Of a DNA stretch of 64,000 nt, positions 57,092-64,000 are shown piece after piece. Location: positions 496,001 through 560,000 of the forward strand of contig CBFDEM010000014.1 in NCBI GenBank assembly GCA_965603825.1, written 5' to 3'. The notes under the pieces were generated by a model, which saw only the letters and a program-made list of their open reading frames with translations, did not search any database and was not told where the DNA came from. The translations under genes were made by a program, and so were the position numbers. The first letter of the stretch is position 1; every line of letters starts with the position of its first letter. This DNA is from Blepharisma stoltei ATCC 30299. Taxonomy: Eukaryota; Protista; Ciliophora.

Positions 57092-60000
57092 ATGGCAGAT
57101 CGACCAAGGCGTGCTCAAAAAGCCCGCAATGAAACCTCCAAGTCAAAATCGCAACCAAAAGCTCCAAAAATCCTATACCAAAAAGATGAAGGGCTAGCAA
57201 TTAAAGCAAATAATTCATTCAGGTTCTGCATCGCTCTAGAAGATGTATTAGCCAAAAACCAATCATTTCTGGCACTTACACTAAAAGAGGCGGGTCAAGA
57301 AAATAAATACCAGAAGCTTAAGGAAGAAAGAATTCCTATAGGTGACGTTATAATGGAGGCTGTGCTCAAAAAAGACGGGAAATTTTTCAAGATAACCAAA
57401 AAGCAGCTGCAAGACGTCAAAAATACATTTAAAACAAAATATAAGCAGCTCACAATTGATGGCAAAGAAGATGAGTCAGAAGAAGAAGAGCAAGAAGAAA
57501 TTAAACAGCCTGTGAAGAAAATAGCTAAAAAATCAGCATCGCCAAAGCCAAAAGAAGAAAAGAAAAATGAAAAAGCTTCACCTGTTAAGAAAAAAGTAGA
57601 GCCAGCAGCAAATGCAAGACTTACCAGATCAAAATCAATAGAAGAGTCTCAAAAAACCAAAGTAGCAAAAAAGAAATCTCCAGAGAAAATTGTAAAGAAT
57701 GAGTTAAGTTATGAAGAAGAAAGCGAGGAAGAGAGCGAAGAAGAAAAGCCAGCAGCAAAAACTCAAAAACCAAGAAGGGCAGATCCGATGGATGAAGACT
57801 TCAGTGAAGAAGACGTCAAACCTAAAAAAAGAACTGCTGCAAAATCTCAAAAAGCAGCAAAGCCTATAAAAAAGGCTAAAAACCCAAAACTCCCCACAAC
57901 CTACAAAAAAGGCAAATACAATCCAGCAGTCCAAGTCCTTGACTTTACCAAGCACATGCTAGATCCTTCAAACGATCCATTTTTCGACGTATCCGTCCTA
58001 ATGAACAACAAAAATCTCCACAGGGCTTGTGCAACCAACAACAAAGCTTTATTTAAAAAACTTTTAAACTCAAAAGAAAAAATTAGTTCAATTCTAGCTC
58101 CATGAAGTGCCGACTGCCGAGTCACTGGTTTAGAGCTTGCAATTATGAATAATAATGATCAATTCGTAAAAGAAATAGTCAAAGAAGTAATAACCCCCAC
58201 AATAAAGCGCGCCCATCCTCCTCAAGTTGGGATAACCCAAGTAGGCACTGGAAGTGTAAGCATTGAAGCCTATGGGGTTATGACAAGAAAAGTTCAGATG
58301 TCTCGAGGGGGAAGAGAAGGAAATAATGCATTTCTTGGGGATATCCCACAGAATGATCATATAAATCAACTTGTTTACGATGTGAAGTGGCTAGAAAGGC
58401 TATATTTAAGTAACTGCTCAGAAAATATCCTGAACTTATTGAGAACGATGATTCCTAACTTTGAAAATACTATATGTGGTACTGTTGGTGAATGCGTGCG
58501 AGCCGGCAATATAGCACTTTCTTCGTACTTAATGGCCCTTGCAATAAAAAATGGTGGATATGGCTTTAACATGCTCCATGAAGAAGTTTTTAAAGATGGC
58601 CCACTGTCTCCATTCAAAAAGGTTTCCATCACCAAAAAGCCAATAATGAATTACTTAGTTGCTCCACTCCATTGTGCATGCATAAATCCTGACTCCACCC
58701 ACCTTAAAGAGTTGATCTCACAATGTGATGACATTAATTACCCAGACATGGAAGGCAGAAAATCCATCCATTACGCAGCAGCTTGTACCTCTGCAGAGCC
58801 TCTCAAAGTTTTGCTTGATCATGGAATGAACCCAAATGATATGAGTCGAGATAAAATGACTCCTTTAATGGTAGCTGCTAAACTAAATAGAGTGGAAAAT
58901 GCTGAAATTCTGCTTGGAAAAGGAGTAAATGCTAATATTAAGGATAAAAAAGGATATGCTGCTTTACACTATGCAGCAGAATATGGATGCATTGAGATGA
59001 TAAAATGTTTACTTGAGCATGGAGCCACTGTAGATCAGCCTGGCCCTGACAGAAAGACCCCAATGATGCTAGCATCAGTCCAGGGACATTTTGAGTGTGT
59101 TCAAGTACTCATTGATAACAAAGCTAAAGTTCTTAAAAGAGATAAATGCAGAAGAACTGCATTAACCCTAGCAGTGAAAAACGGCCAAGCAAAGGTTGTT
59201 AGCCTTTTATTACAAAACGGCTCTGATTTTAATGACCCAGACTCGTCTAAAAATTATCCAATTCACTATGCCGCTGCTTATGGCTGGATAGAGTGCATTG
59301 ATTTATTAATCCAAGCTGGAGCTGACATCAATGCAGTTAATGACTGAAAGCTGCAGCCTCTATTAGTAGCAATGCTAATGGGGCAAACTGGCTGTGTTGA
59401 CAGACTTTTAAAAGAGCCAAACTGTGATGTAAACTGTAAAGATGAAGAAGGAAGAACCCTGCTTTCTCAAGCCATAGAAATGCTTTCTATAGAAACTTTA
59501 TCTCAGATCAAGTTTTTATTAAAAGAAAAAGGAGCTGACCCCAATATTGCTGATCGAAATGGTATGACTGCTTTACATTATTTGTGCAGAAAAGGAAAGC
59601 CTGTTTGCCAGATTCCTAATTTGACTCCTTATGAAATAAAAGACTGGGAAGATCAAGCTTCAGACTTCCAACATGAAGCCCTTGAGCTGCTTATTGAGTT
59701 TGGCGCTGACGTGAATTTAAAATGCAAAAGCGAAAACACTCCTTTACTATATGCCCTGCAAGCAAAAAATATCAGAATCTTCCAAGCATTGATACATAAA
59801 GAAGCAGATTTAGCTATTACTAGCAAAAACGGAGGAGGAATTTTCCATAAATTAGCCTGCTTGGATACAGATTTTCTGGGAATGTATCATCAGTTGCTAA
59901 ATATGCCCAGAGTTGTAAGTGCTGCGATTGATATTGTTGACGATAATGGTTTTACCCCATTTTTAAAGCTTATTGATGAATTTGCTTCAAATCATTCAAC

Positions 60001-63000
60001 TGCTTGGCAAAAGATATATGACTTAGAAAGAAAAATAATGACGAATGAGCTGGAAGAGCAAAAGAAAATAGCAAAAGGCGAAATGCTGGTGGAAACAGCT
60101 TCACCAAGTAGACCTGCAGTGCATGGGAAAATAAGTGGAAAAGGACCTTCTAAGACTATTAAGCAGCCTGTTCCTGAATCATCAGAAGAAGATGAGGATG
60201 TGGATTTTAGTGATAAAGTTGTGCATGGAAAAATAACTTCAAAAAGGCCGGCGAAGAGTATTAAGAATGCAACATTTATTAATAATGAAGACTTTTCTCA
60301 AGGCCTTGCAATGCTCTCAGAGGGGCAGCTAAATCAAACTCAGTTTTCTCAAGTCCCTGCAATGGCTATAGGGGGACAATTTAATTTAGTTCAGACTCCT
60401 ACAGACCCTGCTATGGGTTTTCAATCAAATCAAGCTCAGCCTACGCTTTTCTTCCAAAATTTTAACTCTGAGGCTATAAATTTAAATTACCAAGAACTTG
60501 AAAGAAGGTCCAAAGAAAAATTCGCAGAGCTAGTAGAGATAATAAGAGGAGTCCTTGTCGATCTTATAAACCACGGAGCTAACCCAGCTGCTACAGTTGA
60601 AAAATTGCTAAAATACAAAGAAAATCCTGACCTTATTTATCAAGAAGAAAAAGAAAGCCAGATTCAAGATGCTGGTGGCGTATATAATAGGTATGGGCAA
60701 TCAGAACAAAGGAAATTTTTTATTACTGATATTGATGGTACAAAGAAATATAAAGAGTACGGAGACAAAGGCCAGCAAAATGCTCTTCACCTTATAGCGA
60801 TGAAGCCTGAAAAGCCACTTCTAGACTTTCTGCTATCTCTGCCTATCCCTATTAATCAAAGAGATTTTTATGGTGATACTCCGCTTATTCTATTTGTGAA
60901 AGCAGTCCAACACGTAAGTGCTATTAAAACTTTGATAGACCACAATGCAGACCCAAATATATATAACTGCGAAAATGAAGGCCCTCTATTAAAAGCAATT
61001 CAGCATAATTTGCTAGATATAATAGATCTGCTTATTAAGAATCGGGCTATGATAGAAGTCACCTCAAAACTTGGGAAAACTCCACTGACGTTAGCAGTAG
61101 AAATGAAAAATGTAAAAATCGCTAGAAAATTATGTGAGGCAGGGGCCAGTGTGAATTTTAAAGACCCAAAAGGCCGCACAGCTCTCCATATTGCTATTAA
61201 TTCTGCAGAAGCTACCTCAGACGCATCATTCGACATGGAGTCTCTTTTGCTCCACTTTGGAGCTAACATAAATGCAGTGGACAACCGAGGAAGATGCCCA
61301 TTGCACTATGCTTTTGTAAAAATTGGGAGACCATTTGATAAATCCCAGATAGATCCTATTGAAACTGTAAGCTCAGCTTGCTCAAGATCAGACATCAACG
61401 TAAATATCCAAGACCAGTGGAAAAAGACACCACTCCATTATGCTGCACAAAGGGGAGCACTGACATCAACCATGTTTATGCTAGCAAAAGGAGCGAAAAT
61501 TGATACAGAAGATGAAGATGGAAACACCTCTTTAGGAATTTCTATTAAATTTGGCCATGCAAACTATGCAATTATGCTTATACAAAAAGACGCAAATGTG
61601 AATAAGCTGCTAATAATTAAGCCAGCAGAAGAAAAAAATGAAGAAGAAGTAGAAGAAAACAGGCTCGGGCTTTTTGGAGGAGCAAGAACCAAACAAACAG
61701 CGCGATCAGGTATGTTTGGAGGAATGTCAAGGGCACGACCTACAAAGCCATCCACAAACTCCTCACTACCACAAGGCACTTATTCCATGTTTCGAGCTGC
61801 TATAATACAAGGTTGGCAAGGTGCTGCTTATTTAATGCTATACAATGGCTATCCTTATATGCTAGCAATGCAAGACGCGATGAACGAAATGAAATTTAAA
61901 CTAGTCAAAACTCTGCTTGCCAAGGTTGGGGACGACAAAAAGCTACAGGAAATAAATGAGGATGGGCAAAATCTTTTCCATACATTAGCCATCAAAGGAT
62001 CTGCAGCTGACCAAGAAATCACACAAATTATATGTGATGAATTATTTGAAAGAGGAGTTGACTTATTTGCAGTTGACAATAAAGGCAAAACACCTCTTCA
62101 TTATGCTGCTGCTTCTGGATATCGCTCATTGTGCCAATTTTTATTAGGAAAAGGCTCAAATCATGCATTGCCTGATAATAATGGAATTGTGCCATTAGCA
62201 TATGCATTGCAAGGAAGCAAAATATTGACATCAGAACAAATGATCTTGATTTTCAGAGGATATGGGGCATCCTTGTCTTTTACTTTCAGAGAAGACGGAA
62301 TTGATCTGACCCCAATTCTTCATGCAATCTCTCAGAAAGGCCCTCCGAGGTTAATAACTTTTCTACTGCAAAATGGATGCTCTTTAACTGAAGTGGACAG
62401 CTTAGGAAGGAATGCAGTGATGCTAGCTATAATCAACAATGATATAAAAATGGTAGAAGCACTAATTAAAGAAGGCTCACTTGACATAAACCATTCTGAT
62501 AAGAAAGGACGAAACGCAGCCCACTATGCTGTGCAGCCTTTAGAATATGGCTCTTATGAAAATATAGATATACTAAAACTCCTTATAAGCTCAAAGATAA
62601 ACGCAGGGAAATTTGATAATGAAGGATGGTCACCATTCTGTCTGGCAGCTTTACAAAGGTCAAGAAGAATGGCCAAGCTGCTTGAAGCCCACAGATTCAA
62701 GGTTTCAGAGTACCCAGAACGAAGACTTTCTGTTTTTGAGCCCAGCATGGAGGTGGACTATGAAAAAGACGCTGAGTCATATCTACAAAAGCAGTCAGAG
62801 CTTGTTAAAGAAGAAAAAATAAAGAGACTTCCAGACAACACACAGGACTTCCCTGACTATTATGAAGTGGTTGACGACTATGACTTATACATGACCAAGG
62901 TAGATCTTCAATATGGCCCTTACTCTCAATATCTTTTCTATAGAATGCAGTTATTGCATGACACAAATAGAGATAACTATATCATTTTCACCAGATGGGG

Positions 63001-64000
63001 AAGGATTGGAGAAGTAGGAGCTTTCCAGAGGACGCCTTTTGCTGATAGAAATGAAGCAGAAACAGAGTTTAAAAAGATTTTTAAGTCAAAATCTGGCAAT
63101 GAGTGGAGAGAAGACTTTGTAAGAATTAAAGGAAAATATGTAAAGGTTGAATTCGCGAAAAAGAAAATAAGTCATAAGGACTTTATTAATGATTTTGATT
63201 TAGAAAGAGCTCCAAATAGCAATTTAGTTGAAGAGCTGCAAGTAGCGGTAAAGCATTTTACAAAGAATTCAATATATAGAAGCTATTTTGATCAGTCAGG
63301 AATTGATGTCAACGTTCTCAACTTTTCTTCAATATCAAGAGAAACTATTTTAGAAGCTGAAGAAATTATAAGGAAAATTGCTGTTTTGGTTGGGGAGCTC
63401 AGAGATTCTCAGGATGTTGATAAAAATCTAGATATCAAACAAGAAATTTCTGACTTATCAAGCAGATATTATGAATTAATACCATCTCCTGGATTTGAGC
63501 ACACTGCAGTTAGCCCTATTTTAGCCCCTTTAGATGTTAAAGCCAAACTTGATACTCTTGACAGCTTAAAAAACATCCAAATTGCAAGCAAAATTATTTT
63601 GGGTGCCATTAACAGTCAGGATTCTATCAATCCTCTTGACTATACATATCTTGCCTTGAATACAAGCTTAAACCTTGTAGACTCTAAAAGTCCAGAATTT
63701 AACGTTATTGAGAAATATATGAAAGCAGGAAGAGGCGATGATACACAAATTTTAGGCTTGTTCCAGGTAAATAGAAGAGGTGAAGCTGAAAAAATAGAAA
63801 AATTCAAAAATATAGAGCAAAGAAAGCTATTATGGCATGGAACTGGATCAGCGAATATTATTGGGATTTTAACTCAAGGACTAAGAATTGCTCCCCCTGA
63901 AGTGCCTAATATGGGCTGGATGTTTGGAAAAGGTGTATATTTTGCAGACATGTTTATGAAAAGCTTGGGATATGCTCATTCAGAAGCTGGAGATACAAGC
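57092..64000 (+). CDS. Giant ankyrin-repeat + WGR + PARP regulatory + PARP catalytic protein (PME-5/tankyrase-like); 3' end beyond window
   Basis: One frame from ATG 57092 with TGA=Trp at 58103 and 59345. Many ankyrin repeats; FYRMQL..FTRWGRIG (62990); SSRYYELIP; LLWHGT..GLRIAPP..MFGKGVYFAD. Confidence 0.92.
60119..60265 (+). repeat. Two imperfect 45-bp coding repeats (VHGKISGKGPSKTIK / VHGKITSKRPAKSIK)
   Basis: 60119-60163 and 60221-60265, separated by an acidic spacer. Confidence 0.75.

Follow-up and report, generated by a model that had tools for sequence, protein, structure and literature searches.

Why should a giant poly(ADP-ribose) polymerase (PARP) of a ciliate carry, in a loop between its ankyrin repeats, an exact copy of the first residues of histone H3? 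The question is raised by a stretch of 64,000 nucleotides (nt) from the genome of Blepharisma stoltei ATCC 30299 (contig CBFDEM010000014.1, positions 496,001 to 560,000, forward strand), which we refer to as the window. An initial annotation of the window noticed the peptide ARTKQTAR in the frame of a large ankyrin-WGR-PARP gene and interpreted it as a built-in imitation of the H3 tail. Comparison of the gene product, identical to the public protein P0001, with its homologues suggests that the peptide belongs to a composite module, L-x-G-G followed by an H3-like N-terminus, which recurs in an already known PARP family. We consider it rather probable (roughly 60%) that the loop acts as a surrogate for the H3 N-terminus, at which an ART-binding chromatin factor docks.

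The peptide itself is beyond dispute. ARTKQTAR corresponds to residues 1531-1538 of the protein (61682..61705, forward strand), and the translation of 61622-61801 (+) reproduced the sequence quoted in the annotation. All eight residues coincide with positions 1-8 of H3 as encoded by each of its nine genes in this genome. The back-translated, degenerate ARTKQTAR pattern had ten matches on both strands of the 41.46-Mb genome (64 contigs), nine of which were H3 genes, right after the start Met; the PARP site was the sole match outside H3. About 0.002 matches per genome were expected by chance from the base composition, and the reversed control pattern gave none in the whole genome. These numbers, together with the family recurrence described below, indicate that the 8-mer was inherited as a copy of the H3 N-terminus that selection maintains at the level of the family, and that it is not a chance match. 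Capture of the stretch from an H3 gene at the DNA level was considered as a possible origin. In the DNA, the similarity between the H3 genes and the PARP 8-mer was confined to 24 nt (20-21/23 identical) between unrelated flanks, and codon bias accounts for it. The copy had also been described as an H3 tail with K9 deleted before S10. This is apt when the comparison is with canonical H3 or with the K-S form of the module in relatives, but not when it is with the organism’s own H3, which continues with K-T-(T/P)-S after ARTKQTAR and therefore has no S10.

The module was not restricted to B. stoltei. Among ~165 retrieved members of the family that were scanned for it, LxGG-ART occurred internally in 15 other non-redundant proteins, giving 16 internal copies with P0001; the named carriers are P0017, P0022, P0026, P0078, P0031, P0023, P0028, P0032, P0034, P0036, P0037, P0087, P0127 and P0302. 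The family form reads G-L-x-G-G and then ART(K)xTAR(KS). The exact ARTKQTAR was present in P0017, P0022, P0026, P0031, P0034 and P0302, near-exact copies were found in P0032, P0036, P0037, P0078, P0023, P0028 and P0087, and P0127 retains only GLKGG-ART. Two copies extend to H3 1-28/30: that in P0302 reaches through the H3 K27 region, and that in P0023 (residues 248-277) runs through H3 1-30 with the changes K4F, K14M and A25V. Lys-to-Met changes in histones are known methyltransferase traps, and the K4F/K14M copy could be an inhibitory variant.

Alignment A1, built from 14 modules and the 25 residues that flank each of them on either side, revealed where the conservation lies. L, G, G, A, R and T were invariant, G(-5), T6, A7 and R8 were conserved in at least 90% of the modules, and the rest was unalignable. 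The L-x-G-G before Ala1 was preserved in 14/14 modules of A1 and in P0302 (LYGG), and overall in all 16 internal copies, with position -3 free to be F, R, M, Q, K or Y; three copies read LRGG. K4 was replaced by F, R or T in five of the 14 aligned modules. Ser follows K9 in another count of 5/14, and the P0001 copy has R-S at this place. The module would accordingly be written as a preceding stretch (acidic in P0001 and several others), G-L-x-G-G, and A-R-T-K-x-T-A-R(-K-S...). It is a recurrent element of the disordered linkers in the Clade 1A family of ankyrin-WGR-PARP regulatory domain (PRD)-PARP proteins, although a minority of the members have it.

Codon comparisons point to selection on the peptide. 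In the orthologues P0017, P0022 and P0026, which share 73-84% identity, synonymous differences affected 12 of the 14 codons of the module and no amino acid was changed, whereas the neighbouring residues vary. We regard this as direct evidence that purifying selection acts on the module peptide in these three proteins. Moreover, 13 consecutive module residues are identical in P0001 and P0017, which share only 39% identity overall.

The position of the module was mapped by anchor-based loop extraction with BLAST and by pairwise BLAST. P0001 has two inter-ankyrin loops, loop 1 (residues 986-1127, 60047..60472, +) and loop 2 (residues 1506-1561, 61607..61774, +), and ARTKQTAR lies in the latter. 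The other mapped internal modules are in loop 1, as found by pairwise BLAST for P0017, P0023, P0028, P0031, P0034, P0036 and P0302, and by loop extraction for P0017, P0022, P0026 and P0031. P0023 also has a degenerate copy in its loop 2, GG-IRRATKTTAF-GRGMFG, at the place corresponding to the P0001 module, and loop 2 of P0032 contains a KAARK stretch resembling the surroundings of K27 in H3, of which P0034 and P0037 have weaker forms. Since H3-like units are found in loops 1 and 2 of the relatives, both loops seem to have borne them early in the family, and the P0001 gene seems to have kept the loop-2 copy. Loop 1 of P0001 contains a tandem 45-nt repeat (60119-60163 and 60221-60265, +; 78% identical) encoding VHGKISGKGPSKTIK and VHGKITSKRPAKSIK. 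This pair resembles GGKAPRKTI, an H3 12-18-like stretch ahead of the module in P0022, and is possibly a decayed element of that kind. No DNA repeat shared by loop 1 and loop 2 was found. The mimicry extends beyond H3, as P0105 (3008 residues) has an H4-like tail, GRGKGGRGLGKGGARR (GRGKGGRGLGKGGARRAVRK), at residues ~705-735, after a poly-acidic run. In P0003, P0006, P0007, P0009, P0011, P0041 and P0045, loops 1 and 2 are rich in FG/GLFG motifs (SLFG, GLFGN and NLFA series), similar to the FG repeats of nucleoporins. The contigs of the metagenomic homologues bear eukaryotic genes (RIB43A, EF-hand, LRR).

Two further family members have the H3 tail at the N-terminus. In KAL9658090.1 of the heterolobosean Willaertia magna (P0129, 2270 residues; L020:3001-9813), H3 1-27 follows the start Met directly, and a stop codon immediately upstream of the ATG identifies this as the true N-terminus; the P0023 copy is identical to this tail at 23 of 27 positions. 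The PARP of Euplotes (Moneuplotes) crassus (P0310, 1442 residues) also begins with an H3 tail, followed later by GGLF-ARPTK. Its residues 116-538 align from ankyrin block B onward, so that the protein starts at the site of the loop-1 module elsewhere. In a FastTree phylogeny of the WGR-PRD region, calculated without a PARP1/2 outgroup, P0001 and all proteins with internal modules except P0302 fell into one clade of 70 rows with support 100, to which proteins of Paramecium, Stentor and Stylonychia also belong. The modules were scattered over both halves of this clade, and P0129, P0302 and P0310 were placed outside it; both major clades of the family tree contain modules. At least 8-11 changes are needed to explain presence and absence on the tree. 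The distribution suggests that the module is either very old and often lost, or was gained repeatedly; the LxGG prefix accompanies it both ways.

The host gene encodes a protein of 2404 residues (270 kDa) and covers 57092..64000 (+) of the window, as established by a frame scan, extension into the genome, Pfam and the identity to P0001. The open reading frame (ORF) starts with the ATG at 57092 and ends with a TAA at 64304-64306, 306 nt beyond the window end. From 57089 to the window end, the only interruptions of the frame are two TGA codons, at 58103..58105 (residue 338) and 59345..59347 (residue 752), both on the forward strand and both read as Trp, as the residue at the same positions of P0001 is W. 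UGA as Trp has been reported for B. stoltei, along with a macronuclear genome of 41 Mbp, 66% AT and tiny introns (PMC9942806); the G+C content of the window stretch was 32-40%. The Pfam search, performed on three TGA-free pieces of the ORF or through P0001, detected many ankyrin repeats (E-values down to 1e-78), followed by WGR, PARP_reg and PARP. Ankyrin block B (residues 1216-1505, 60737..61606; AlphaFold2 predicted local distance difference test (pLDDT) score ~90) precedes loop 2, and block C (residues 1562-1880, 61775..62731; Pfam and AlphaFold2) follows it. Further downstream on the forward strand are the WGR domain (62879..63112; PF05406, E 5e-19), the PARP regulatory (helical) domain (63218..63649; PF02877, E 5e-17) and the catalytic domain (63689..64000; PF00644), which is cut by the window end. 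The C-terminal 525 residues of P0001 matched the WGR-HD-CAT part of human PARP1 with E 1e-72, and the alignment to human PARP1 showed an intact H-Y-E triad (WHG, GKGVYFADM, NEYIVY). The H3-like loop precedes an intact catalytic module of the DNA-break-sensing PARP1/2 type by ~400 residues. Minority contigs in public runs, at ~1/4 to 1/3 of the depth, were ~5% divergent over short stretches of the catalytic region and nearby (63469-63589, 63626-63770, 62825-62875 and others, none within the H3-mimic loop); they may be alleles or a strain variant.

This architecture assigns P0001 to the ankyrin-type Clade 1 PARPs, which are the Clade 1A of Citarelli et al. (PMC2964712) and the ‘Clade 1-ank’ of Perina et al. 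(PMC4245714), with Dictyostelium ADPRT3, C. elegans PME-5 and proteins of Paramecium and Tetrahymena as examples. Like these, P0001 has ankyrins, then WGR, PRD and a PARP catalytic domain with the H-Y-E triad; in the tree it groups with Paramecium, Stentor and Stylonychia members, and no SAM domain was matched by Pfam in the ORF. Tankyrases (Clade 4 PARPs) likewise combine ankyrin repeats with a PARP catalytic domain. A tankyrase identity was ruled out by the presence of WGR and PRD and the missing SAM match; Citarelli et al. put proteins of this kind in Clade 1 and apart from the tankyrases (PMC2964712). The genome encodes two giant ankyrin-WGR-PARPs and three small PARPs. The second giant, a paralogue of 2376 residues (G000:C54:720510-727637, -), has no in-frame TGA, and its loops 1 and 2 are poly-acidic and Asn/Tyr-rich, respectively.

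Both AlphaFold2 models, calculated with family alignments as input, present loop 2 as a disordered excursion from a continuous ankyrin solenoid. The mean pLDDT was 86.6 for residues 1216-1900 and 85.8 for residues 1506-2404, whereas residues 1514-1557 scored 29-41 in both. Paired short strands, 1506-1509 and 1562-1565, anchor the loop on the solenoid. According to these models, the H3-like module is an exposed, flexible display loop of which ~45 residues are disordered. Within it, the acidic run EEKNEEEVEE (61628..61657, +), which has counterparts before the module in several homologues, is followed by L-F-G-G (residues 1527-1530, 61670..61681, +), directly before Ala1. Behind ARTKQTAR lies a second, degenerate unit, M-F-G-G plus MSRARPTK (residues 1541-1552, 61712..61747, +), whose ARPTK recurs after GGLF in the E. 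crassus homologue. The stretch of the second unit at 61724-61750 also resembles MSRRKQxKP, the N-terminal RBBP4-binding motif of FOG1, SALL4 and BCL11A, and is a candidate for a motif of this kind. The suggestion that the loop binds the protein’s own ankyrins found no support, which is not a disproof, as both models left it undocked at pLDDT 29-41. Docking on WGR-PRD-CAT was likewise not seen in the AlphaFold2 model, again a lack of support rather than a disproof. No in-frame 15/16-nt GT...AG intron candidate was recognised in the loop by eye. Four runs of one study were colinear across it, and their contigs over 60713-61929 showed 0 differences, no joints and no indels.

We propose that the PARP displays a surrogate H3 N-terminus on this disordered loop. 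A factor whose usual target is A1-R2-T3 of H3, such as a WDR5-type reader with a WIN site or another binder of the H3 N-terminus, would bind the loop, and the binding would either tether the PARP to that chromatin machinery or compete with nucleosomal H3. The conservation of LxGG, A1-R2-T3 and T6-A7-R8, rather than of K4 or S10, favours recognition of the extreme H3 N-terminus over K4 methylation or Ser-ADP-ribosylation. Modification of K4, which the initial annotation had considered, is not supported as the conserved function, given the F, R or T found in its place. WDR5 also offers a precedent for the two locations of the module in the family. The WIN motif, known from MLL/SET1, KANSL1, KIF2A, MBD3C and PDPK1, has the consensus [GV]-[SCA]-A-R-[AST]-[EKR], and internal and N-terminal ART forms both bind WDR5 (PMC7871196). 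G-G-A-R-T-K of P0001 agrees with the internal consensus at 5 of 6 positions, with G at [SCA], and a WDR5-like mode of binding would reconcile the internal and the N-terminal versions of the PARP family.

Several observations weigh against this reading. As regards the partner, the WIN position -2 is G, and not S, C or A; a WIN-type contact would leave the conserved L(-4) and T6-A7-R8, which are outside the WIN definition, unexplained. A WDR5-type partner is therefore a candidate. As regards this particular copy, it has no K9 and is placed in loop 2, and not in loop 1 as the internal modules of the mapped homologues. The paralogue is 55% identical overall and has very similar loop flanks, but the loop itself is unrelated, 21 residues shorter and without the motif. 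The nearest relatives (50-60% identity in the region) and Stentor have Gly/Phe-rich low complexity instead of the module, which is also absent from the named Paramecium, Stylonychia and Oxytricha-like homologues. Its absence in the paralogue and the relatives means that loss is frequent and tolerated. A short-query search for fragments of closer orthologues, for example from other Blepharisma, returned only generic ankyrin proteins, and no close orthologue is present in the databases; the purifying selection described above is that on the copies of other family members. Finally, the runs covering the loop are not on record as RNA; expression and retention of the loop in the mRNA are only presumed. 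The initial annotation had named a motif not conserved in close orthologues as grounds for rejection, and the paralogue and nearest relatives indeed do not have it. Its expectation of a conserved 8-mer in a variable loop was borne out by distant family members, in which the flanks are unalignable; it failed for close relatives, and wherever the position was mapped the conserved copy was in the other loop.

An alternative that is compatible with docking, and that we regard as possible, is that a ubiquitin-protease-like enzyme cuts after L-x-G-G and frees the H3-like Ala1, as the initial annotation had speculated for the Gly-Gly. The cut would yield a 99-kDa C-terminal fragment with ankyrin block C, WGR, PRD and the catalytic domain, and a 171-kDa N-terminal part; the halves could stay joined through the continuous solenoid. 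The comparative data lend this idea some support. L(-4), G(-2) and G(-1) never vary, -3 is free, and the junction is always GG|A. This is the pattern of the LXGG sites at which ubiquitin-type precursors (ubiquitin and ubiquitin-like) are cut and of those used by papain-like and USP-type proteases, in which L-x-G-G also precedes a small residue; the LRGG of three members matches the C-terminus of ubiquitin. Two family members have the tail directly behind the start Met, and the Euplotes protein begins at the architectural position of the loop-1 module of the others. The H3-like stretch of P0301, an unrelated SET-domain protein, has no LxGG. On the other hand, the LxGG is preceded by an acidic disordered stretch and not by a ubiquitin-like fold, which most deubiquitinases need. 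Gly/Phe motifs of the GLFG type are common in these loops anyway, and an internal WIN-type motif works without a cut. More tentatively, LxGG|ART might be a dedicated processing site, by which a nicked, DNA-break-activated PARP would gain a free H3 N-terminus to be read or written by ART readers and K4, R2 or T3 writers, coupling break sensing to the histone code. Should the processing reading hold, the M-ARTKQTAR starts in Euplotes and Willaertia would be the hard-wired form of the cleavage product.

It is unlikely that the P0001 copy is a relic, that is, a not-yet-decayed remnant, without present function, of a module that was functional in an ancestor. Such a history would suit the frequent losses on the tree (the 8 to 11 or more changes noted above), the paralogue and nearest relatives without module, the degenerate copy in loop 1 and the fact that K9 and the remaining tail are already gone in P0001. 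A neutral remnant would nevertheless be expected to decay as its surroundings did, and the 13 residues shared with P0017 stand in a loop whose remaining sequence does not align even with that of relatives of 50-60% identity.

We find it just as doubtful that the loop is an automodification acceptor or a pseudosubstrate, imitating the H3-tail substrate and being ADP-ribosylated in cis or filling the active site. The H3 tail is the best-known substrate of PARP1/2, with HPF1-dependent Ser-ADP-ribosylation at the K-S sites H3S10 and H3S28, and the disordered P0001 loop between interaction domains and WGR is reminiscent of the automodification region of PARP1. The catalytic triad is intact, ARKS is kept in 5/14 aligned modules, KAARK is present in loop 2 of P0032 (and more weakly in P0034 and P0037), and P0105 has its H4-like tail. 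PARP1/2 with HPF1 are reported to modify H3-tail serines in K-S motifs (10.1101/2021.07.06.449314). Yet nine of the 14 aligned modules have no Ser after K9, the P0001 copy reads R-S instead of K-S, the strongest conservation is at LxGG-ART and not at the acceptor position, and AlphaFold2 leaves the loop undocked from the catalytic domain. HPF1 (PF10228) had no match in the six-frame translated genome, a weak negative, as no positive-control genome gave a signal. Ser-ADP-ribosylation at the S10-like Ser as the conserved function thus found no support.

Still less probable is a nuclear localisation signal of the histone type, by which the basic H3-like peptide would bring the 270-kDa protein into a nucleus through the histone import pathway. 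The H3 and H4 N-terminal tails are reported to be import signals for Kap123 (PMC5677370). H3-like and H4-like tails are both present in the PARP family, and FG-like motifs flank the module. However, the structural contacts of Kap123 are reportedly at the later tail lysines K14 and K23, which are absent from the P0001 copy and several others, the invariant L-x-G-G-A-R-T would be left unexplained, and the paralogue and many relatives do without the module. A chance match in low-complexity sequence is extremely improbable: an 8-mer could appear somewhere in a scan of many gigabases, but the genome-wide expectation and the reversed control, the recurrence of the same LxGG-prefixed module in 15 other family members, the module alignment and the synonymous-only codon changes refute a chance origin.

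How does a surrogate H3 N-terminus in a PARP compare with known histone mimics? The G9a automethylation site and the influenza NS1 tail are established examples, and SETDB1 motifs, EZHIP and JC virus have reportedly been described as such. The known cases of histone mimicry come mostly from a small number of viral and metazoan proteins, and the copied stretch is usually one of 4-6 residues that surrounds a modifiable lysine (ARKS/ARKT type). What P0001 shares with them is that a protein of the nucleus or of chromatin has a short tail copy placed in disordered sequence. It differs in copying the extreme H3 N-terminus, over 8 residues here and up to 28-30 in relatives, in the LxGG prefix, and in the conservation of A1-R2-T3 and T6-A7-R8 and not of the lysines. 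Our literature search, covering mimicry by the 8-mer, histone mimics with PARP or ankyrin, and ankyrin-WGR proteins of ciliates, yielded no earlier description, in agreement with the initial annotation, and the surveys of Clade 1A do not mention a histone-like element (PMC2964712, PMC4245714). What appears to be new is therefore histone mimicry within an already known PARP family, and the absence of the module in the named model ciliates may explain why it was overlooked.

We also encountered long proteins (1500-2600 residues) that are not PARPs and, in most cases, start with an H3 tail, namely P0303, P0306, P0307, P0309 (oomycetes), P0292, P0300, P0308, P0311 and P0301; four of these H3-tail proteins are from Saprolegnia, Aphanomyces and Thraustotheca. 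In P0311 the H3 tail is joined to an H4-like GGGAKRHRKIL, the Met-H3 tail is at residue 197 in P0300 and at residue 20 in P0308, and P0301, which combines SET and FHA, contains H3 3-34 internally. Some further matches beside these were plain H3 gene fusions or mis-models (PF00125).

For the family, the finding means that a copy of 8 to 30 residues of the H3 N-terminus is a recurrent, selected module of DNA-break-type PARPs. Its carriers belong to several lineages of eukaryotes and include ciliate-type proteins, a heterolobosean and many uncultured protists, and the conserved LxGG in front of it suggests that proteolysis exposes the tail. Antibodies to the H3 N-terminus or to H3K4 marks may cross-react with PARPs that bear it. 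The finding can be tested in B. stoltei, E. crassus and W. magna, which figure in genome papers or public genome records. In ciliates, a PARP posing as a nucleosome tail might act in programmed genome rearrangement. If functional, the module would connect poly(ADP-ribosyl)ation physically and directly with the readers of the H3 N-terminus, and would be the first specific feature for the functionally obscure Clade 1A PARPs.

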